Of a stretch of DNA of 64,000 bases, positions 17,083 through 62,908 are shown piece by piece. Under the pieces are notes generated by a model. It was not told where the DNA came from. It searched no databases and saw nothing but the letters and a program-made list of their open reading frames with translations. The stretch's first letter is position 1. Each line of letters begins with the position of its first letter. The stretch lies in the sequence record NC_019406.1, one strand, 5' to 3'. The translations under genes were made by a program, and so were the position numbers.

Positions 17083-17403
17083 AGGGAGTGGGTCGCCCTC
17101 GGCGAGAGTCGAGGGTACCTGAAAGAATCCATCCGGACCCCTTGACAAAATCGGGGGGCCGGGGGAGGGTCGAGTTTCAAAATGGGACACCCAGGGACCC
17201 AAGGCCGGGGTGGGTTGTTAACCATTTTTCCGGGGCGCCTAGTGTAGTGACCGCGTTTTGATGTGCGGGTCAATGGCGTCAGAGATTTCGAAAAATTTCT
17301 CAGAGGAGTAGGGGACCCAGGCCAGCGGCTTTTGGATTCGAAAACACGAATCTGGCTGACCGAAATTTTATTTCTGTAAAATAGGGGTCAATAAGCTCAA
17401 ACG

Positions 17404-17438
17404 AAAAAGCCCGGCGGTGATCGGCACCGCCGGGCTTT
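17404..17438. terminator. Intrinsic terminator, probably ending the minus-strand capsid-paralog transcript
   Basis: AAAAAGCCCGGCGGTG-ATCGG-CACCGCCGGGCTTT. Confidence 0.75.
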
Positions 17439-17494
17439 CGTGAACGAAACTCGCGCTCCGCTCAGCCTGAACAAGACCATAAACCACAGCCCGA

Positions 17495-18460
17495 TCAGGC
17501 CGTCAAGCGAGCCCCGGTAAGACCCGACAGGCGCACTCCGGCGCGACCGCTCATCACGCCCAGGGCGACCAGCCATTCGTAGCGCGTACGCTGCACCGGA
17601 ATGTGCTCGACGTAGCCCAGGTCATCCACCTGGACCGAACCGTTCTGGAGTCCGGTGACGCCGTGCTTGCCGATATTCAGTACGTAGGCATCCGTTTCCA
17701 AGATGGCTGGCTTACCTTCCAGGCGGTAATCGACGATCACGGTGACCGTGTTGTCCTCGTCGGCGGTGGTGTAGCGATAGGTGCCCTTAGTGCGCTTGAG
17801 CAGCCGACGCTTCTTCATGGCGTCGCGCATTTCGACCGAAACGAGAAGGTAGTTGGGATCGTCGACCATGGCGATTGCTTGGTCCAGGACAGTACGGCTG
17901 AGCACGCCGTTGACTTGGAAGTGCTGACCGCCCACGAAGCGCTGACGCAGCCCATCGGCGACGCGCGGATCGACGTCCGAGTCACCGTTCACTAGTGAGT
18001 TGGTCAGGTAGTAGGCCTTCTCACGCAGGTACATGCGGCGCTGCGCCGGCACGATCGCTTCGCCGTGAGTCTTGATGAGGGCCTTGTCGACGTCGCAGTC
18101 GCCGCCGGCGATTTTCAGGACTTCAACAGTGGGGTTGACCACGCCGACTCCGCTATTCATGGTCTCGGGGCGGCCCTTGAAGGCGATTCCAGGCAGCCAG
18201 CCCTCTTGGATATAGGTGAAGCTACCTCCCGCAATGTCGAGCCAGGGCAGCGCGCGCATCAGTTCGGATTCGGACAGATATTGGACGGCTTCAGCGTAGA
18301 GGTCGCCCGGCTTATCCTTAGCGGACCAGGGCGTACCGGCTTGCGCCGTGATGTTGGTGGTATCCATGGCCGGCGAAGCGGCAGCTTGGGTCGCAACGTT
18401 GAGCGCGGGAACGGCGACGAACAGGCCCAGCAGGGACTTAAAGAAGTTACGACGTTGCAC
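17495..18460 (-). CDS. Major capsid protein paralog (HK97-type) with N-terminal twin-arginine signal peptide (321 aa)
   Basis: AGGAG SD 6 nt before GTG 18460 gives MQRRNFFKSLLGLFVAVPALNVATQAAA. The body shares blocks with 39756-40688: GVGVVN, VEVLKI.GGD.DVDKALIKTHG, YVLNIG..GV.GLQNG, RTR.EWL, VMSGRA. Confidence 0.85.
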   Translation of the reverse strand: MQRRNFFKSLLGLFVAVPALNVATQAAASPAMDTTNITAQAGTPWSAKDKPGDLYAEAVQYLSESELMRALPWLDIAGGSFTYIQEGWLPGIAFKGRPETMNSGVGVVNPTVEVLKIAGGDCDVDKALIKTHGEAIVPAQRRMYLREKAYYLTNSLVNGDSDVDPRVADGLRQRFVGGQHFQVNGVLSRTVLDQAIAMVDDPNYLLVSVEMRDAMKKRRLLKRTKGTYRYTTADEDNTVTVIVDYRLEGKPAILETDAYVLNIGKHGVTGLQNGSVQVDDLGYVEHIPVQRTRYEWLVALGVMSGRAGVRLSGLTGARLTA

Positions 18461-18533
18461 CTGAATCTCCTGATTGATGGAACGGCTCAGGTTGTATCGC
18501 GTGCCAGTATGGCTGTCCATACATCGCGAGTGA

Positions 18534-19175
18534 TTAAGGAGTCCGATAGATCGCGGTCTTCTCGACATCCACGCGATAGCCCGGCATCGGGCCGATCTTC
18601 CGCTTCCCATCCATACGGATGCCGCCAAAGCGGTCACCGCGCGTGCTGTCGTACGGCGCCGGCGTCTCCGCCGCACCAACGCCCACTTCGTACCAGCCCT
18701 GGTCGGCCGTCTCGACCAGCAGGGTCGCGTGAGCCAACCCGATGCCGGGGCTCCACATCATCAGGATCATTCGGTCGCCGCCCTGCCCGGCCTTGTGGAG
18801 CCGCTCGGCCAGGGTGAGCGCGTAATCCTCGCAGTCGCCGCACAGGGTGTCATTGTCCCAGAAGTCCGCGTTGCCGATGCGCAGCTTGTCATCGCGGTAC
18901 TCGAACTTCTTGCGCATCTCCAGGTCGATCGAGATCACATCGGTCGATGCGAGCGCCTTGCCCGGCCCGCCGGCGCAGATCAACGCCTTCGGCGCACGTC
19001 GACAGAAGTACGCTAGCTCGTAAATGTTGATCGCTGCAACTCGCGCGGGCGAAATGGTCGAATTGACCGCGCCGCCGCGTACCGCGCCAATTAAAGGGAT
19101 TTCAGGGCACTGCGACGCGGCCGGCGAGCAGGACAGCAGGGCAAGGCAGGCGAGGAGTCCGGCGAGAATACGCAT
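18534..19175 (-). CDS. Predicted lipoprotein, transglutaminase-like cysteine protease (BTLCP / peptidase C93 / LapG-like)
   Basis: Signal MRILAGLLACLALLS-C (lipobox); catalytic-type motifs GDCEDYAL and HATLLV. Confidence 0.75.
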   Translation of the reverse strand: MRILAGLLACLALLSCSPAASQCPEIPLIGAVRGGAVNSTISPARVAAINIYELAYFCRRAPKALICAGGPGKALASTDVISIDLEMRKKFEYRDDKLRIGNADFWDNDTLCGDCEDYALTLAERLHKAGQGGDRMILMMWSPGIGLAHATLLVETADQGWYEVGVGAAETPAPYDSTRGDRFGGIRMDGKRKIGPMPGYRVDVEKTAIYRTP

Positions 19176-19240
19176 GACAGGAAGTCCGGCAGGAGAATGC
19201 CAGGAATCCTGTCACCATCAAACGTGACTCGCAAGTAATG

Positions 19241-19467
19241 AAAAACCCCGCCGAGACGCGGACGCCATCCCAGCGGGGTTCCTTCCCATCCTTGACTGGA
19301 GAGGGTCAAGAACGCCGCCGTTCTAGGCAACGCCTTGAGAAACGTCAAGCTGCGAAAGGAAAAGCCCGCCAGCGCGACATGGGGGGAGCGCTGACGGGCT
19401 AGGCGGTCCAGCGCGGTGGGGCCGACGCCGGAGACTTCTATAGAACAGGCGTCGAGATGCCTGTCAA
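19241..19467 (-). ncRNA. Candidate small RNA / attenuated leader: sigma70-like promoter followed by two terminator-type hairpins
   Basis: TTGACA at 19467-19462 with CTATAG -10; hairpins 19360-19400 and 19241-19280 end in T-runs on the minus strand. Confidence 0.45.
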
Positions 19468-19597
19468 CATGCGACCATGTCATCGCGCATAGAAAAAGCC
19501 CGGCGCTCTGGGTTTGCGCGCCGGGCCTCAACACTTGCTGCACAGGGAAGGCCCCTAGGTCTTAGGCCACCCTGAAGTCCTCTGGTGAAATCAAGAG

Positions 19598-19609
19598 CTA
19601 AGCGCGCAT
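19598..19609 (-). other. Three-codon minigene ATG CGC GCT TAG with perfect SD, inside a ~170-nt transcription unit
   Basis: AGGAGG 5 nt upstream; promoter TTGACA-N17-TAGCGT at 19696-19668; terminator 19493-19526. Confidence 0.45.
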
Positions 19610-19813
19610 GACAGCCTCCTGTGACGAGTTTCTGGGAAATCCCTCAGGTTTCCTGTGTGAAGTCTTCACGCTAGAGATGCCCTTAGAAGGTGTCAACCAG
19701 AAAAGCACGTGGGGTTCAAAAATCCTGGCATTTCAACCTCAGCGTTAACATGTCTTATTTCGTGGCGCTCGATTTTTAGCTTGACAGCGTGACTGGCACG
19801 TTCCCGAGCAACG

Positions 19814-19850
19814 TGCCAGTTTTCTTGACATGCCCTGTTAACCATGTCAT
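19814..19850 (+). promoter_or_regulatory. Portal promoter candidate TGCCAG-N5-TTGACA with TTAACCAT CtrA half-site
   Basis: Same architecture at 30406, 38510, 41861, 42951, 58709. Confidence 0.6.
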
Positions 19851-19956
19851 CCGTGGCGTCGATCAGGGCCGCGTGCCCTGGTTCCCTCCTTCGTCATAAG
19901 CCTTGGGCGGGGTCCGTGAGTAGAGTTTTGGACCTCGCCCACTTTTTCAAAAGAAC

Positions 19957-21942
19957 ATGGCTGGTCTTTCACCCAACTCCGCGAACATTCGACGCACGAA
20001 GCGTGGCGCTCAACAGTTCACGCACCTCGTGGTCCATCCGGAGTACGAGTATTATCGTCCGGATTGGGCGAAGATTCGCGACGCCATCGCCGGCGAACGC
20101 GAGATCAAGGCTCAGGGTGTCAAGTACCTGAAGGCCCCGAAGGGCTTTGACGACGAAGACTACGCGAACTACCTCGATCGCGCCGCCTTCTACAACATGA
20201 CGTCGCAGACGCAGGCCGGCATGGTCGGTCAGATTTTCCGCCGTCCGCCCGTCATCCGTAACCTCCCCAACACGGGCGCGATCACGGGCCGTGATGCCGA
20301 AGGTGGTGTCCAGGTCGTGGCGCCGGCGTCGATCGGCAAGCTACTCACTCAGCTTCAACGCTTCGCCAAGGACGGCACGTCCCACCAGGGTTTCGCCAAG
20401 ACGGTCGCGCTGGAGCAGGTGGCGATGGGCCGTTTCGGCGCCCTGGTCGATGTGGCTCCAAGCAGCGATCCCACCGCGCCGGCGAAGTCCTACACGGTCG
20501 GCTACGCCGCCGAGAACATCGTCGACTGGACCGTAGAGGACGTCGACGGTTTCTACGTCCCGACCCGCATTCTGCTGCGTGAGTTCGAGCGCGTGGATGA
20601 GCACGCCACGCCGTCGCAGCAAAATCCCTGGATCGGACGCGAAGGCAGCGAGACTGCCCAGCGCACGAGTGGCGGTCGCCGCGCCGGCCTCGCGGAACGC
20701 CAGGGCTCGGCCCGTGCTGACGCGCTGGCTCGCCCGTCGCGCTTCACCAGCAGCTACACCTTCCGCACGATCTACCGCGAACTGATCCTGGAACTCCAGA
20801 AGGACGGCAGCCGGGTCTACAAGCAGTTCGTCTACGTCGAGGACCCGCTGGGCCAAGCCCGCGACGTCTACACTCCCATGGTGCGCGGGCGCACCCTCCC
20901 CTTCATCCCCTTCGTGTTCTTCGGCTCCATGTCGAACGCGGCCGACTGCGAAAAGCCGCCGCTGCTCGACATCGTCGAATTGAACCTGAAGCACTATCGC
21001 ACCTACGCCGAACTGGAGCACGGCCGCTTCTTCACGGCGCTGCCCACCTACTATGCACCCGAACTCGACGACTCCGACGCCTCGGAATATCACATTGGTC
21101 CGGGCCGGGTCTGGGTTGTCGACAAGGAGAGCGGCATCCCCGGCATCATCGAGTTCAAGGGCGAGGGTCTGAAGACCCTGGAGCGCGCCCTGAACGAGAA
21201 GGAGCAGCAGATCGCCGCGATCGGCGGACGCCTGATGCCCGGCATGTCCAAGTCGGTCTCCGAGTCGGACAACCAATCGGCGCTGCGTGAAGCCAACGAG
21301 CAGTCGCTGCTTCTGAACGTCATCATGGCGCTCGAAGACGGCATGACCTCGGTCGTTCGTTACTGGCTAATGTTCCGCGACATCCCGCTGACCGACACCG
21401 CGACGCTCCGCTACGAGATCGACGCGACCTTCCTGACGACGGCCCTGGACGCCCGCGCCCTGCGCGCGATCCAGCAACTCTACGAAGGTGGCCTGCTGCC
21501 GATCGACGCTCTGTACGAGAACTTCGTCAAGAACGGCATCATCCCATCGACCCAGACGCTGGAAGAATTCACGATCAAGATGAACGATCCGAAGTCGTTC
21601 ATTGGTCAGCCGGACGCGATCGCGATGCGTCGTGGCTACGTCAGCCGCCAGCAGGAACTGGATCAGCAGCGCGCGGCCCGCGACGCCGACTTCCAGCAGC
21701 AGGAACTGGAGCAGGCCGAGCGCCATCTGGAGATCGACGAGGAGAAGCTGCGCATCTCCGCCAAGGTCGGTTCGACCAGCGTGGCCGCGAGCCGCAAGTT
21801 GGGCGATCCCGAGCAAGCCAAGCCGTCCAAGGCCGAGCAGGCTCAGATCGACGCCCAGCAGAAGCAGGCCGCCGCCAAGCCTGTCACGCCCACCCCCGGC
21901 ACCGTCCAACGCGGCCGTCCGCCGCAAAATGGAGCGAGCTAA
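19957..21942 (+). CDS. Portal protein (DUF4055-type)
   Basis: PDWAKIRDAIAGE...YLDRAAFYN motif, 661 aa, position upstream of head genes. Confidence 0.85.
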   Translation: MAGLSPNSANIRRTKRGAQQFTHLVVHPEYEYYRPDWAKIRDAIAGEREIKAQGVKYLKAPKGFDDEDYANYLDRAAFYNMTSQTQAGMVGQIFRRPPVIRNLPNTGAITGRDAEGGVQVVAPASIGKLLTQLQRFAKDGTSHQGFAKTVALEQVAMGRFGALVDVAPSSDPTAPAKSYTVGYAAENIVDWTVEDVDGFYVPTRILLREFERVDEHATPSQQNPWIGREGSETAQRTSGGRRAGLAERQGSARADALARPSRFTSSYTFRTIYRELILELQKDGSRVYKQFVYVEDPLGQARDVYTPMVRGRTLPFIPFVFFGSMSNAADCEKPPLLDIVELNLKHYRTYAELEHGRFFTALPTYYAPELDDSDASEYHIGPGRVWVVDKESGIPGIIEFKGEGLKTLERALNEKEQQIAAIGGRLMPGMSKSVSESDNQSALREANEQSLLLNVIMALEDGMTSVVRYWLMFRDIPLTDTATLRYEIDATFLTTALDARALRAIQQLYEGGLLPIDALYENFVKNGIIPSTQTLEEFTIKMNDPKSFIGQPDAIAMRRGYVSRQQELDQQRAARDADFQQQELEQAERHLEIDEEKLRISAKVGSTSVAASRKLGDPEQAKPSKAEQAQIDAQQKQAAAKPVTPTPGTVQRGRPPQNGAS

Positions 21943-59239: not shown

Positions 59240-59325
59240 ACGGGAATTCCAGAGCGGTCAAATGGGCTGGTCTCCAAAACCAGCGGCGCAAGCCTTCGGG
59301 GGTTCGAATCCCTCTTCCCGTGCCA
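59240..59325 (+). tRNA. trnW: tRNA-Trp(CCA) with a long variable arm
   Basis: ACGGGAA/TTCCCGT-G-CCA; CTGGT-CTCCAAA-ACCAG; extra arm GGC-GCAA-GCC. Confidence 0.85.
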
Positions 59326-59335
59326 CCTCTAATAC

Positions 59336-59412
59336 GCGTCTATAGTATATTGGTCTGATTACCCTTCGTTGCCAACGAAGAGAGGCGGGTTCGATTCCCG
59401 CTAGACGCTCCA
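59336..59412 (+). tRNA. trnG: tRNA-Gly(GCC)
   Basis: GCGTCTA/TAGACGC-T-CCA; CTTCG-TTGCCAA-CGAAG. Confidence 0.95.
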
Positions 59413-59416
59413 ATTC

Positions 59417-59490
59417 GCGTCCGTAGCTCAATGGTAGAGCAATGGGCTTCCACCCCGTGGTCGTGGGTTCGATCCCCACCGGACGCTCCA
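59417..59490 (+). tRNA. trnG: tRNA-Gly(TCC)
   Basis: GCGTCCG/CGGACGC-T-CCA; loop CTTCCAC. Confidence 0.95.
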
Positions 59491-60054
59491 GCTTTTCTTG
59501 CAAGCTGCCAGAAATCCTGTCACCATTCTTTCGTGAACCGGGAAGCCCCTCTGTTCCTCTCTCCGCCCTGGCCGTGCGGATGACGTACATGCGCTCCCGC
59601 CTCTGCTCCCCGCGCCTGTCTTCGGACGGGAAGGCCATATGCCCACAAGGGCGCGCAGGAGTCGTGCGAAGAGGGCGTTGGCGCCGGGCCAGCAGGAGAA
59701 GGCGTTAGGAGCGTCACCCGGCATTTACATCGTTATGGAGCTAGGCATGCACCCCTATTCGCCTCCCACCGATATCGGCCGCACGATCGCCGGCCACGAA
59801 GTCCATCACCTCACCGCTGACTGCCCTCGCAATCACTCGCGCCGCGCCGCCAAGAGGCTACGCCACGCGGCCCGTCAGTACGATCGCCAACTTATTTGTC
59901 AGGAGGTAGCCAATTTTCTTGACGCCTCCCTCGCGGCCTGATACAAGCGCATCATTATGACGTACCTGATGTCCCTTTACGAACGAGAGGCCCGCCTGGG
60001 CCGAGATACGACCGCCGCTTAATTGCGGCTTTCGTGTCGATGGCCCTTGCTTAT

Positions 60055-60133
60055 GGGGCCTTCGTCTAAACTGGACTAAGGATAGCCGGCTTTCACCCGG
60101 CAGATGCGGGTTCGAACCCCGTAGGCCCTTCCA
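60055..60133 (+). tRNA. trnE: tRNA-Glu(TTC)
   Basis: GCCGG-CTTTCAC-CCGGC; TTCGAAC T-loop; CCA. Confidence 0.9.
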
Positions 60134-60148
60134 AGCCATCCTCACTCA

Positions 60149-60223
60149 GGTGCGTTCGTATATCGGTTAATACACCGGACTGTCGATCCGGGAAGACGGG
60201 TTCGACTCCCGTACGCACCGCCA
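60149..60223 (+). tRNA. trnD: tRNA-Asp(GTC)
   Basis: GGTGCGT/ACGCACC-G-CCA; CCGGA-CTGTCGA-TCCGG. Confidence 0.95.
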
Positions 60224-60236
60224 AGGTTTCGCTGAA

Positions 60237-60383
60237 ATGCCCCTGCAACAAGGCTCCAGCCAAGCAGTCGTTTCGCATAACATCGCCAAGCTGATCGCCG
60301 AGGGTCACTCTCACGATCAGGCTGTCGCCATCGCGCTCGCTCAGGCAAAGCGCAAGAAGTCGCGTAAGACGCGGCGCAAGTAG
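60237..60383 (+). CDS. Small basic conserved phage protein (48 aa)
   Basis: MPLQQGSSQAVVSHNIAKLIAEGHSHDQAVAIAL matches the widespread MPLKKGKS..ISENI...QAVAIAL family. Confidence 0.75.
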   Translation: MPLQQGSSQAVVSHNIAKLIAEGHSHDQAVAIALAQAKRKKSRKTRRK

Positions 60384-60501
60384 GATCAAGATGCCCGCCG
60401 GCTAACCTCTCTCCTGATGAACGATTTCCAGGAAGGAGGACCCCAAATGGTCTCTCTGTCAGAGCCTGCCTGCTTCTCTGGATCGTCCAGGAGGAGCCAG
60501 C

Positions 60502-60699
60502 ATGGCCCACAATATCCAGCGCGCGAAGCGCATGCTGTCGCTGTCGAACGCGGCACTTCTTCAGGTCATCGCGGGCAAGACGCTCGCGTCGGCCTCCGCC
60601 CGCTTTGAATTGAAGCGTCGCGGCTACGAAGCCGTCCTCACCAAGAAGGGAGGATGGCACTTGGCCCCCATCACTCCCCACAACGAGCCGGCGCTTTAG
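60502..60699 (+). CDS. Hypothetical protein (65 aa)
   Basis: AGGAGGAG SD; hairpin after the stop. Confidence 0.7.
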   Translation: MAHNIQRAKRMLSLSNAALLQVIAGKTLASASARFELKRRGYEAVLTKKGGWHLAPITPHNEPAL

Positions 60700-60714
60700 C
60701 GCCGGCTCTTGAGA

Positions 60715-61165
60715 TCACGCCGCCCCGATGGCGTGACCCCGAGCACGCGCCCGATCGCGTGCGGATCGCGCCTGGAAGCCCCCGCCCAGGCGCAAGCGCG
60801 GTGCCCGTCCACCGCGTCCCCGTTTTGGAGTGGTCAAGCTCCAAACGATTGCGTCCCTTCTTGACTATGTTCGGCGGCCGACATAACGTCGTTCGTAATG
60901 CGGCTGCGCTTCGGCGCGGGCTAAAGGCAGTTCTGGGGGAAGACGGCCCTCGACGTCTTCGGGCGTCTTGCTAGTCGTCTGGACAAACGGGCTGGTGAGG
61001 GGGCGACCGCACTCGACCTCTCCGGTGAGTGACCACCCACAAGTCGCAGGTTCAATTTTCTACTTGCACCGTTCGCGCGGCGTAGCTAGAAGATCGACGT
61101 GGGCCGCCGGGGAGCGGCCTGTCGTGGTTTCGGCCACACAAAGCCCCACCCGGCTCTCCCTACGA
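60715..61165 (+). ncRNA. Candidate large multi-hairpin RNA within the tRNA array
   Basis: At least nine hairpins; the first four have CCC-containing loops; no SD-supported ORF. Confidence 0.45.
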
Positions 61166-61498
61166 ATTTTTCTTTGACAGTATTCTTGACACCCGTCTCG
61201 AACTGTGAGAGAAGCAAATCCTCAACGGGCCACAGCGCCCACGTTTTCGCCTTGGATCAGAAGATGACCTTCTCGACGCATAAGCCGAGCACTTTGAAGC
61301 CCGCCACCGGCGCGGCCTCGCTCGCCCATGCGTCCCTTCTGACGCCGGCGACGAGCAAGCCGTCGCTATCACGGTCGCTCTAGGACTCCAGTAGTCCTCT
61401 TCAGAAGCGGCCGGATCACCGCCGCTTCTGCTCTCCACGCTTACACCCCAAAGCACAGCAGACGCGGCCCCTCCAACTCGGGGTTCGTTAACCATCAT

Positions 61499-61576
61499 CT
61501 GCGTGTAGCTCAGTCTGGTTAGAGCGCTCGGTCCGGAGCCGAGGGGTCGTAGGTTCAAATCCTGCTACGCAGACCA
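61499..61576 (+). tRNA. trnP: tRNA-Pro(CGG)
   Basis: CTGCGTG/TACGCAG-A-CCA; CTCGG-TCCGGAG-CCGAG. Confidence 0.9.
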
Positions 61577-61583
61577 AATCAGT

Positions 61584-61658
61584 CAGAGTCTGGCCGAGCG
61601 GCTAGGCACCGGTTTTGGGAACCGGACGAGGCGGGTTCAACTCCTGCGGCTCTGACCA
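61584..61658 (+). tRNA. trnP: tRNA-Pro(TGG)
   Basis: CCGGT-TTTGGGA-ACCGG; CCA. Confidence 0.9.
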
Positions 61659-61659
61659 T

Positions 61660-61736
61660 CAGTGTGTGGCGCAGTTTGGTAGCGCGCTTGCTCGGGATGC
61701 AAGAGGTCGCAGGTTCAAATCCTGCTACACTGACCA
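61660..61736 (+). tRNA. trnP: tRNA-Pro(GGG)
   Basis: CTTGC-TCGGGAT-GCAAG; CCA. Confidence 0.9.
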
Positions 61737-61742
61737 GTTTAA

Positions 61743-61815
61743 GCTGTCGCGTGTGGATTCACGCCGGCCCCTTGGTATGGGGCAGTAGAAGGTTCAATTC
61801 CTTCCGGCAGCACCA
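61743..61815 (+). tRNA. trnT: tRNA-Thr(GGT), atypical D-arm junction
   Basis: GCCCC-TTGGTAT-GGGGC; D stem directly abuts the acceptor stem. Confidence 0.8.
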
Positions 61816-61820
61816 AGTTC

Positions 61821-61890
61821 GCCGATGCTTCAGGGAAGAAGTGTCTTTCGTAGTGACGCCAGGAGGGTTCGAGTCCTTCCATCGGCACCA
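61821..61890 (+). tRNA. tRNA-Thr(CGT)-like, 70 nt, 3-nt D loop
   Basis: GCCGATG/CATCGGC-A-CCA; TGTCT-TTCGTAG-TGACG (U31.U39 mismatch). Confidence 0.6.
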
Positions 61891-61931
61891 GTTTTAATTC
61901 TTGATCCGAGGAGATCAAATGTAGACAAAAT

Positions 61932-62012
61932 GGATCGTGAGCTTAATTCCGGGTGGCCGGGACCGTCCTCTTAAGTCGAGAGCAAGTGGTTCGACTCCAC
62001 CACGATCCTCCA
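61932..62012 (+). tRNA. tRNA-Lys(CTT)-like with expanded D region and weak anticodon stem
   Basis: GGATCGT/ACGATCC-T-CCA; loop CTCTTAA; canonical T loop. Confidence 0.5.
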
Positions 62013-62018
62013 AAACAT

Positions 62019-62108
62019 GGGTGAGTTCTCCGAGCGGTCGAAGGGGAGTGACTCTTAATCACTTGGACGAAAGTCCCACCGTGGGTTCGAATCCCACCTC
62101 ACCCTCCA
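62019..62108 (+). tRNA. trnK: tRNA-Lys(CTT) with a long variable arm, U73
   Basis: GGGTGAG/CTCACCC-T-CCA; AGTGA-CTCTTAA-TCACT; extra arm GGAC-GAAA-GTCC. Confidence 0.85.
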
Positions 62109-62114
62109 ATTTAT

Positions 62115-62202
62115 CCCGGTGTGACGAAGTTTGGTAGACGTGCGAGTTTCAGATACTCGTGTCCGAGAGGGCGGGGAGGTTCGAATCCTCTCACCGGGAC
62201 CA
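62115..62202 (+). tRNA. trnL: tRNA-Leu(CAG)
   Basis: CGAGT-TTCAGAT-ACTCG; long V arm; CCA. Confidence 0.9.
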
Positions 62203-62209
62203 AATTAAT

Positions 62210-62296
62210 GCCCAACTGGTCGGAATGGCAGACGCAGGATACTCAAAATATCCGGACCGCAAGGTCGTCCCGGTTCAAGTCCGGGGTTGGGCACCA
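62210..62296 (+). tRNA. trnL: tRNA-Leu(CAA)
   Basis: GGATA-CTCAAAA-TATCC; CCA. Confidence 0.95.
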
Positions 62297-62303
62297 AGTT
62301 TAA

Positions 62304-62391
62304 CGCAGCGTGGCGGAGTCTGGTAGACGCGCCATCTTGAGAGGGTGGTGTCCGAAAGGGCGGGGAGGTTCGAATCCTCTCGCTGCGACCA
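62304..62391 (+). tRNA. trnL: tRNA-Leu(GAG)
   Basis: CCATC-TTGAGAG-GGTGG; CCA. Confidence 0.9.
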
Positions 62392-62399
62392 AGTTCTGA

Positions 62400-62474
62400 T
62401 CTGGTGTAGTCGAGTGGTTAAGACGCCGCATTGTGGATGCGGAGGCTCTGGTTCAATCCCAGGCACCAGTACCA
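62400..62474 (+). tRNA. trnH: tRNA-His(GTG), no G-1, U72/A73
   Basis: CCGCA-TTGTGGA-TGCGG; 3' end CACCAGT-A-CCA. Confidence 0.9.
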
Positions 62475-62478
62475 ATAC

Positions 62479-62553
62479 GGGGATGTAGCTCAGGGGTAGA
62501 GCGGCTGTTTTGCAAGCAGCGGGTCGGGGGTTCGAATCCCTCCATCTCCACCA
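62479..62553 (+). tRNA. trnA: tRNA-Ala(TGC)
   Basis: G3.U70 present; loop TTTGCAA. Confidence 0.95.
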
Positions 62554-62558
62554 ACAAC

Positions 62559-62631
62559 GGGGTATGCGCAGGGTCCGCAGGCATCCTTTGCAAGGAAGCT
62601 GAGGTGGGTTCGAGTCCCACATACTCCACCA
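62559..62631 (+). tRNA. trnA: tRNA-Ala(TGC) second copy, atypical D-arm junction
   Basis: G3.U70 present; D stem GCG/CGC abuts the acceptor stem. Confidence 0.75.
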
Positions 62632-62632
62632 C

Positions 62633-62722
62633 GGATGGTGAACCGGTCAGGCGCGCCGGGGCGGTTTCGAAAGCCGAGCGGACCTTCACGGGTTTGGGGA
62701 TCATGCCCTCCGCCATCCGCCA
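62633..62722 (+). tRNA. trnS: tRNA-Ser(CGA), non-canonical T loop ATCATGC
   Basis: GGATGGT/GCCATCC-G-CCA; loop TTCGAAA; long V arm. Confidence 0.8.
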
Positions 62723-62726
62723 ACAT

Positions 62727-62816
62727 GGAGAGCGAACCGGACAGCCGCGCCGGGACCGATTGGAAATCGCGTCGGACCTTCACGGGTCTGGGGATGGTGT
62801 CCTCCGTTCTCCGCCA
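62727..62816 (+). tRNA. trnS: tRNA-Ser(GGA), non-canonical T loop ATGGTGT
   Basis: GGAGAGC/GTTCTCC-G-CCA; loop TTGGAAA; long V arm. Confidence 0.8.
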
Positions 62817-62820
62817 ACAA

Positions 62821-62908
62821 GGATGTATGGCTGAGAGGCTGAAAGCGCCCGTCTTGAAAACGGGTCGACCGCAAGGTCGCGGGAGTTCGAATCTCTCTAC
62901 ATCCGCCA
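62821..62908 (+). tRNA. trnS: tRNA-Ser(TGA), canonical
   Basis: CCCGT-CTTGAAA-ACGGG; TTCGAAT; G73-CCA. Confidence 0.95.

Follow-up and report, generated by a model that had tools for sequence, protein, structure and literature searches.

A predicted exported BTLCP-family peptidase of Caulobacter phage CcrColossus belongs to a divergent phage clade and lies next to a capsid paralog by insertion

The locus and its annotation

The window analysed here is a stretch of 64,000 nucleotides and comprises the initial 64 kb of the genome of Caulobacter phage CcrColossus (JX100810.1 / NC_019406.1; hereafter Colossus); a 9-kb segment around gene 37 aligns with this record at 99.9% identity and at the same positions. 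Gene 37, whose product gp037 is a predicted exported cysteine peptidase, is followed on the same strand by gene 36, which encodes a diverged paralog of the major capsid protein (MCP), and is separated from the portal gene (gp038) by a divergent control region (Table 1). In GenBank, gp037 has been labelled "putative transglutaminase-like cysteine peptidase" since 2012, and RefSeq names it "peptidase"; both the gene and its family assignment are already in the public record. The text of the genome paper (Gill 2012, PMC3556154) does not mention the peptidase.

An initial annotation, made from the letters alone, had reported a lipobox, the motifs GDCEDYAL and HATLLV, and a same-strand gap of 73 nt to gp036, and all of these are in the sequence. 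The N-terminus of gp037, as read from the sequence, consists of M-R and a hydrophobic run followed by LLSC, with Cys16 ending the lipobox. GDCEDYAL spans residues 113-120 (Cys115 codon, 18831-18833) and HATLLV residues 149-154 (His149 codon, 18729-18731).

Table 1 Features of the gp036-gp037 locus in the Colossus window.
Feature	Coordinates	Strand	Basis
Rho-independent terminator	17409..17435	-	Annotated in the record; found by scan; conserved in CcrPW and contig L010
gp036, diverged major-capsid-protein paralog with N-terminal twin-arginine-type signal	17495..18460	-	NCBIfam, PHROG, alignment
Spacer between gp037 and gp036 (73 nt), holding the gp036 Shine-Dalgarno (AGGAGA) and no terminator	18461..18533	-	Sequence reading, terminator scan
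gp037 CDS, predicted exported BTLCP-family (Peptidase C93) cysteine peptidase, 213 aa	18534..19175	-	HMM matches, AlphaFold2, Foldseek
Clade-specific C-terminal extension, residues 166-213, with near-invariant R182, D189 and G190	18537..18680	-	Clade alignment
BTLCP core, ~residues 48-165, with G-D-C-E-D-Y motif (Cys115) and His149	18681..19034	-	BTLCP match extent, hhalign
Signal peptide with lipobox L-L-S-C, residues 1-16, Cys16 predicted lipidated	19128..19175	-	Motif reading
Divergent control region from gp037 to the portal gene gp038, with three conserved units	19176..19956	-	Alignment, terminator scan

The orthologue in phage CcrPW (L005 3432-4073; NC_048046.1 / MH588545.1) is annotated from an internal Met as a protein of 149 aa. 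An intact 213-aa ORF with the same lipobox begins 192 nt upstream of that annotated start. The short CcrPW peptidase is an annotation difference, and the gene is not broken.

Family, fold and catalytic residues

The initial annotation had placed gp037 in the BTLCP/C93 family and had named an HMM search against PF06035 as a check, and the placement is borne out. Specifically, the Pfam model scores 31.2 bits (E 2.2e-7) against a gathering score of 27, although just model positions 41-120 of 162 are covered and the threshold is exceeded by only 4 bits, and phrog_12671 ('peptidase') matches gp037 over its full length (E 2.9e-97). Together with low dN/dS values (0.08 against the CcrPW orthologue, 0.25-0.46 against more distant homologues), these matches indicate that gp037 is a real gene and not a chance ORF, and that it is under purifying selection.

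Searching the PDB with gp037 as a single sequence returned no relevant match, and a clade profile was needed. The profile of 17 homologues matched LapG (4u65_E, E 4.5e-5; 4fgo, E 1.4e-3), and the G-D-C-E-D-Y-A stretch around the catalytic Cys is identical in gp037 and LapG 4u65_E. In line with this, the six best PDB matches of the AlphaFold2 model (mean pLDDT 85) in Foldseek were all LapG (probability 1.0, TM 0.38-0.49), at 14-18% identity over ~130 residues. Alignment of the phage clade to 25 cellular BTLCPs with hhalign gave a probability of 99.6% (E 6e-25, 134 columns). On the strength of these profile, model and alignment matches, gp037 is assigned to the BTLCP superfamily. The earlier description as LapG-like is thus right at the family level, where LapG is the nearest solved relative, but does not extend to orthology, since gp037 scores 10.7 bits against the NCBIfam LapG equivalog model (NF045674), for which the cut-off is 320. 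LapG (P. fluorescens; L. pneumophila; 4u65, 4fgo/4fgp/4fgq) shares with gp037 its place in PF06035 and a predicted periplasmic location. TM between the two reaches only 0.43-0.49 over ~130 residues, and gp037 departs from LapG in lacking an acid where the canonical Asp would align, in its additional C-terminal extension and in its predicted lipid anchor.

Conservation of the presumed active site was assessed in 72 clade members. Cys115 and His149 are found in all of them (72/72), and each residue of the G-D-C-E-D motif is found in 67-71 of the 72. The host C. crescentus encodes a BTLCP of its own, HvyA (CCNA_00166), with catalytic residues C192, H226 and D241, and a D241A variant is reported to be non-functional (PMC4241560). 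This canonical triad Asp (V-L-D-N motif in cellular proteins) aligns with V164 of gp037 in MAFFT or with V166 in hhalign, and both columns are hydrophobic throughout the phage clade, leaving no acid at the canonical position. Conserved acids do occur nearby, namely E163 (68/72), just before the canonical column, and D158 (66/72), and also in the C-terminal extension, where D189 is Asp in 67 and Asn in 4 of the 72 members. E163, D158 or D189 may be substitutes for the third catalytic residue.

The hydrophobic Asp column is also what would be expected if gp037 were not a protease at all, but either a transglutaminase acting as a cross-linker of envelope proteins or a binding protein inactivated by loss of the triad; the BTLCP domain has in addition been credited with transamidation and deamidation chemistry (PMC4241560). 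Nonetheless, a Cys, a His and a G-D-C-E-D motif that are invariant or nearly so in 72 members are unexpected for a dead enzyme, and either E163 or D189 may serve as the third residue. We therefore regard a non-proteolytic gp037 as distinctly unlikely.

Four further cysteines are conserved in the 72 members (C58 in 71, C67 in 71, C23 in 65 and C112 in 63), and would fit two disulfides formed in the periplasm.

Export signals of the peptidase clade

The N-terminal export signal that had been read from the sequence of gp037 is present, and the N-termini of the clade as a whole all look exported. A lipobox-like motif was found in 31/72 members, including gp037, CcrPW and Brevundimonas phage Bajun, and the rest have a Sec-type signal or N-terminal anchor; the peptidases of phiCbK and Rogue are among those with a Sec-type signal or anchor in place of the lipobox. 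In E. coli, a Ser at position +2 directs lipoproteins to the outer membrane. By this rule gp037, which has Ser at +2, would be sorted to the outer membrane. The possibility that gp037 is an o-spanin was considered separately and rejected; spanins were placed in the lysis cassette by Gill 2012 (PMC3556154).

The capsid paralog gp036

gp036 is called hypothetical in GenBank and "major head protein" in RefSeq. It matches the NCBIfam model MCP_gp7_epsi_15 (78 bits) and phrog_212, and is 43% identical to the true MCP, gp081; according to Gill 2012 (PMC3556154), gene 36 is a duplicate of the major capsid gene 81 that has diverged and been translocated. Two metagenomic homologues, P0019 (L012 8001-9116) and P0020 (L015 7982-9088), align with gp036 over the full length at 41% identity. 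All three proteins share an R-R-N-F/L-F-K motif at the N-terminus followed by a hydrophobic stretch, as well as two deletions relative to bona fide capsid proteins, and P0019 scores higher against gp036 (230 bits) than against gp081 (181 bits). These shared characters and the closer affinity of P0019 to gp036 argue that the HK97/epsilon15-type capsid-fold paralogs are a small, old clade, and its dN/dS of 0.36 points to purifying selection.

With regard to the export of gp036, the initial annotation had referred to a Tat capsid paralog. The capsid ancestry holds and a twin-arginine-type motif is present, but no Pfam or NCBIfam Tat-signal model matched any of the three proteins, even with the E-value relaxed to 10, so Tat export of gp036 is a reading at the level of the motif only. 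The neighbours of P0019 showed no export signals and no informative families. An exported capsid-fold protein would be unusual, and the paralog clade is a more unusual object than gp037 itself.

Genomic neighbourhood of the peptidase gene

The peptidase gene is back-to-back with the portal gene in 9/9 phiCbK-like loci that we examined. Prohead protease genes likewise adjoin the portal gene, gp037 in Colossus also adjoins a capsid-fold gene, and the MCP of phiCbK appears to be processed (PMC3556154); from its place between portal and capsid-like genes, gp037 could be taken for a cytoplasmic head-maturation protease. However, prohead proteases belong to another fold family, and no prohead-protease family matched gp037 in Pfam, NCBIfam or PHROG. 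An N-terminal signal with lipobox, conserved cysteine pairs and membership of a periplasmic enzyme family also speak for a predicted exported protein, and the gene is transcribed away from the head module. We consider the chance that gp037 matures phage heads to be next to negligible.

A second proposal concerns the other flank. The initial annotation had suggested that gp037 and gp036 form a two-gene extracytoplasmic module, with the peptidase possibly maturing the exported capsid-like protein; as a dedicated pair, the lipoprotein peptidase would process its Tat-exported neighbour. The operon-like layout on which this was based is real in Colossus, where both genes lie on one strand with a terminator-free spacer of 73 nt and a single terminator after gp036, and this layout makes a common transcript of gp037 and gp036 likely. 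Export-type N-termini are predicted for both proteins, and the Tat-type paralog clade co-occurs with the peptidase in at least one other phage genome. The gene-neighbourhood comparison, which had been named as a check, nonetheless goes against the module. A capsid-like gene neighbours the peptidase in Colossus only (1/9 phiCbK-like loci). In CcrPW and contig L010 nothing lies downstream of the peptidase, in the phage encoding the peptidase orthologue P0005 the place is taken by an HNH endonuclease gene (L007 6642-7037), and in phiCbK and Rogue by a gene for a small acidic cytoplasmic protein.

The way in which gene 36 came to its present place can be traced by DNA alignment, for which the corresponding segments of CcrPW (L005 4074-4130) and of the metagenomic contig L010 (6640-6700) were used. 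In both of these relatives, the terminator that closes the gp037-gp036 pair in Colossus closes the peptidase gene, almost directly after its stop codon. In Colossus, a precise insertion of ~1.03 kb (~17507-18533) that contains gene 36 separates the peptidase stop codon from the terminator and so splits a unit that existed beforehand. Gene 36 takes its last four codons from flanking DNA that is already present in the relatives, and the inserted segment has no promoter-like box and no terminator of its own. The slot has the look of an insertion hotspot, since another relative carries its HNH endonuclease gene there.

The two genes also occur apart from one another. CcrPW, the closest relative, has no second capsid-like gene at E 1e-10, and together with ~29 isolates it keeps the peptidase under purifying selection without any such capsid paralog. 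In the 93,781-bp metagenomic sequence SRR25434964_1910, P0019 and P0005 are ~27 kb apart and on opposite strands. The genes are thus not linked in relatives, an outcome that the initial annotation had named as refuting its proposal, and a conserved two-gene module of peptidase and capsid paralog is not supported; as judged from these comparisons, the pairing with gp036 is a one-off insertion in Colossus and the peptidase is independent of gp036. The predicted co-transcription follows from the site of insertion and is therefore no evidence of partnership, and we hold a dedicated pair to be very unlikely.

Distribution of the peptidase in phages

gp037 is part of a divergent, phage-only clade of about 70 clusters. 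In an exhaustive profile search of 1.8 billion representatives, ~62 clusters were retrieved at E 1e-30 or better with full-length matches. A gap in E-value separates these from generic BTLCPs, which appear at ~1e-12 and match the core only (~residues 48-165); all cellular BTLCPs are set apart from the phage clade by this wide gap. Scanning 185,579 species genomes for the clade motifs gave only two loci, of which one was an 18-kb MAG contig and the other a canonical Parvibaculum BTLCP with 31% identity, whose long contig is evidently cellular and whose neighbouring genes are ordinary cellular ones. Given this outcome, the sequence data indicate that the peptidase clade is essentially viral and not a recent capture from hosts.

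Among phages, the peptidase was found in 31 records, which include Colossus, CcrPW, the phiCbK/Karma/Magneto/Swift/Rogue types and Bajun. No tblastn match to it was obtained in the Bertelyvirus group or in the large Brevundimonas BpoS phages with records in the same collection. Clade relatives are also found in unrelated viral contigs without portal or capsid homology, and BFVD contains other viral BTLCP-fold proteins from other viral groups. In a survey of river single-virus genomes, BTLCP was the most frequent auxiliary gene and looked horizontally exchanged (PMC11283719). PHROG 12671, which gp037 matches over its full length, and these virus-encoded BTLCP 'auxiliary metabolic genes' are among its nearest known counterparts. 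The virion proteome of phiCbK, in turn, comprises eight proteins, and gp041, the peptidase orthologue, is not among them (PMC3556154). An accessory and non-structural role fits with this frequency in river viruses, the occurrence in other viral groups and the absence from the phiCbK virion.

The divergent control region

Three units precede gp037 in the 780-nt divergent control region, each made up on the minus strand of a TTGAC-type box and, after a short interval, a GC hairpin with a T-run. CcrPW and contig L010 share all three units with Colossus, and L007 shares them in part. The units could correspond to two or three small RNAs, or else form an attenuated leader ahead of the peptidase gene. 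The peptidase may therefore be expressed by read-through of such a leader or from its own weak promoter. An Rfam scan of 17300-20000 gave nothing credible, and a sigma-70 consensus scan found no promoter, the TTGAC-type boxes being visible in the alignment only.

On the minus strand, the boxes are at 19696-19691, 19467-19462 and 19348-19343, and the hairpins at ~19526-19492, 19399-19355 and 19278-19240. Within the first unit there is also a mini-ORF of three codons, ATG CGC GCT TAG, preceded by a strong Shine-Dalgarno sequence, AGGAGG (19598-19620, minus strand). The start context of this mini-ORF resembles that of gp037 itself, with CTGTCATGCG in both.

Elsewhere in the window, a cluster of 15 tRNA genes was observed on the plus strand (59240-62908), with specificities for Trp, Gly (two genes), Glu, Asp, Pro (three), Lys, Leu (three), His, Ala and Ser. 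Clusters of tRNA genes are a known feature of these large phages.

Host precedent and proposed role of gp037

Two characterized BTLCPs bear on the possible function of gp037. LapG acts from the periplasm, where it cuts the retention module of a type-1-secreted adhesin. A literal LapG-like cut of an adhesin by gp037 is unlikely, because LapA, the substrate of LapG, is reported to be absent from C. crescentus (PMC4241560). HvyA, on the other hand, belongs to the host itself and is a periplasmic inhibitor of capsulation that depends on catalysis (PMC4241560). It resembles gp037 in a Cys-to-His spacing of 34 and an Asp two residues past the Cys (for HvyA, by the published residue numbering), and differs from it in having a plain Sec signal without a lipid anchor, a canonical C/H/D triad and a gene within the capsule export locus. 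HvyA, which acts in the same envelope, is the best functional lead for gp037.

The reading towards which we lean, with modest confidence, is that gp037 is a stand-alone, exported accessory BTLCP enzyme of phiCbK-like phages that acts on a target in the host envelope. An enzyme that remodels the envelope on its own is favoured because LapG and HvyA both act from the periplasm on surface-export systems. In this scenario, a divergent BTLCP cysteine peptidase (or transglutaminase) would be made in the infected cell and leave the cytoplasm by the Sec pathway. For the Colossus lineage, a lipid anchor at Cys16 would place its catalytic domain in the periplasm. There, the Cys115/His149 pair would cut or modify a periplasm-exposed host envelope protein, most likely part of an export pathway for surface polymers or adhesins, with the capsule or another surface polymer as the leading candidate. 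The surface of the infected cell might thereby be remodelled during the latent period, for example by being kept capsule-free, and gp036 would ride on the peptidase transcript without being the partner of the enzyme. Activity, localisation and target are each inferred here from family, signal and precedent. Any benefit to the phage from a capsule-free infected cell is speculative; the capsule has been reported to protect C. crescentus cells from phage phiCr30 (PMC4241560).

A more specific target has also been suggested for gp037. The initial annotation had mentioned pilus, adhesin and S-layer as conceivable targets, and an enzyme that reaches from the periplasm to clip the phage's own receptor structures (the pilus portal, parts of the flagellum) or some other surface protein would agree with a phage-encoded predicted envelope lipoprotein, with the action of BTLCPs on periplasm-exposed parts of surface proteins, and with the conservation of the gene in the phiCbK group, which depends on flagellum and pilus. 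However, no evidence ties any BTLCP to pili or flagella, the Bertelyvirus group and the BpoS phages gave no match, and relatives are encoded on viral contigs that are unrelated to this group, which argues for a more general target. We therefore consider receptor clipping to be unlikely, and hold to the same degree of doubt the advantage it would confer, i.e., that superinfection would be stopped and progeny kept from adsorbing to lysing cells.

A further possibility is that the operon which arose by accident in Colossus has since become functional, such that Tat-exported gp036 and lipid-anchored gp037 cooperate in the periplasm. For example, trimming or cross-linking by gp037 might turn the folded, HK97-fold gp036 into a lattice associated with the envelope, and the infected cell would then present an altered surface. 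We regard this as highly improbable. If true, it would make gp036 the first known case of a capsid-fold protein that a phage deploys outside the cytoplasm.

Returning to the stand-alone enzyme, what the present analysis adds to the public record is a phage clade with conserved predicted export signals, no canonical Asp and a private C-terminal extension. The host precedent of HvyA offers a concrete hypothesis for the commonest 'auxiliary' gene of freshwater viruses, one that is unexplored in the literature searched, where no link is drawn between phage BTLCPs and HvyA.

As a separate observation on the host gene, the hvyA transcript changes little during phiCbK infection (PMC10688885 supplement). 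With fold changes of ~1.1-1.5, host hvyA is neither strongly induced nor shut off.
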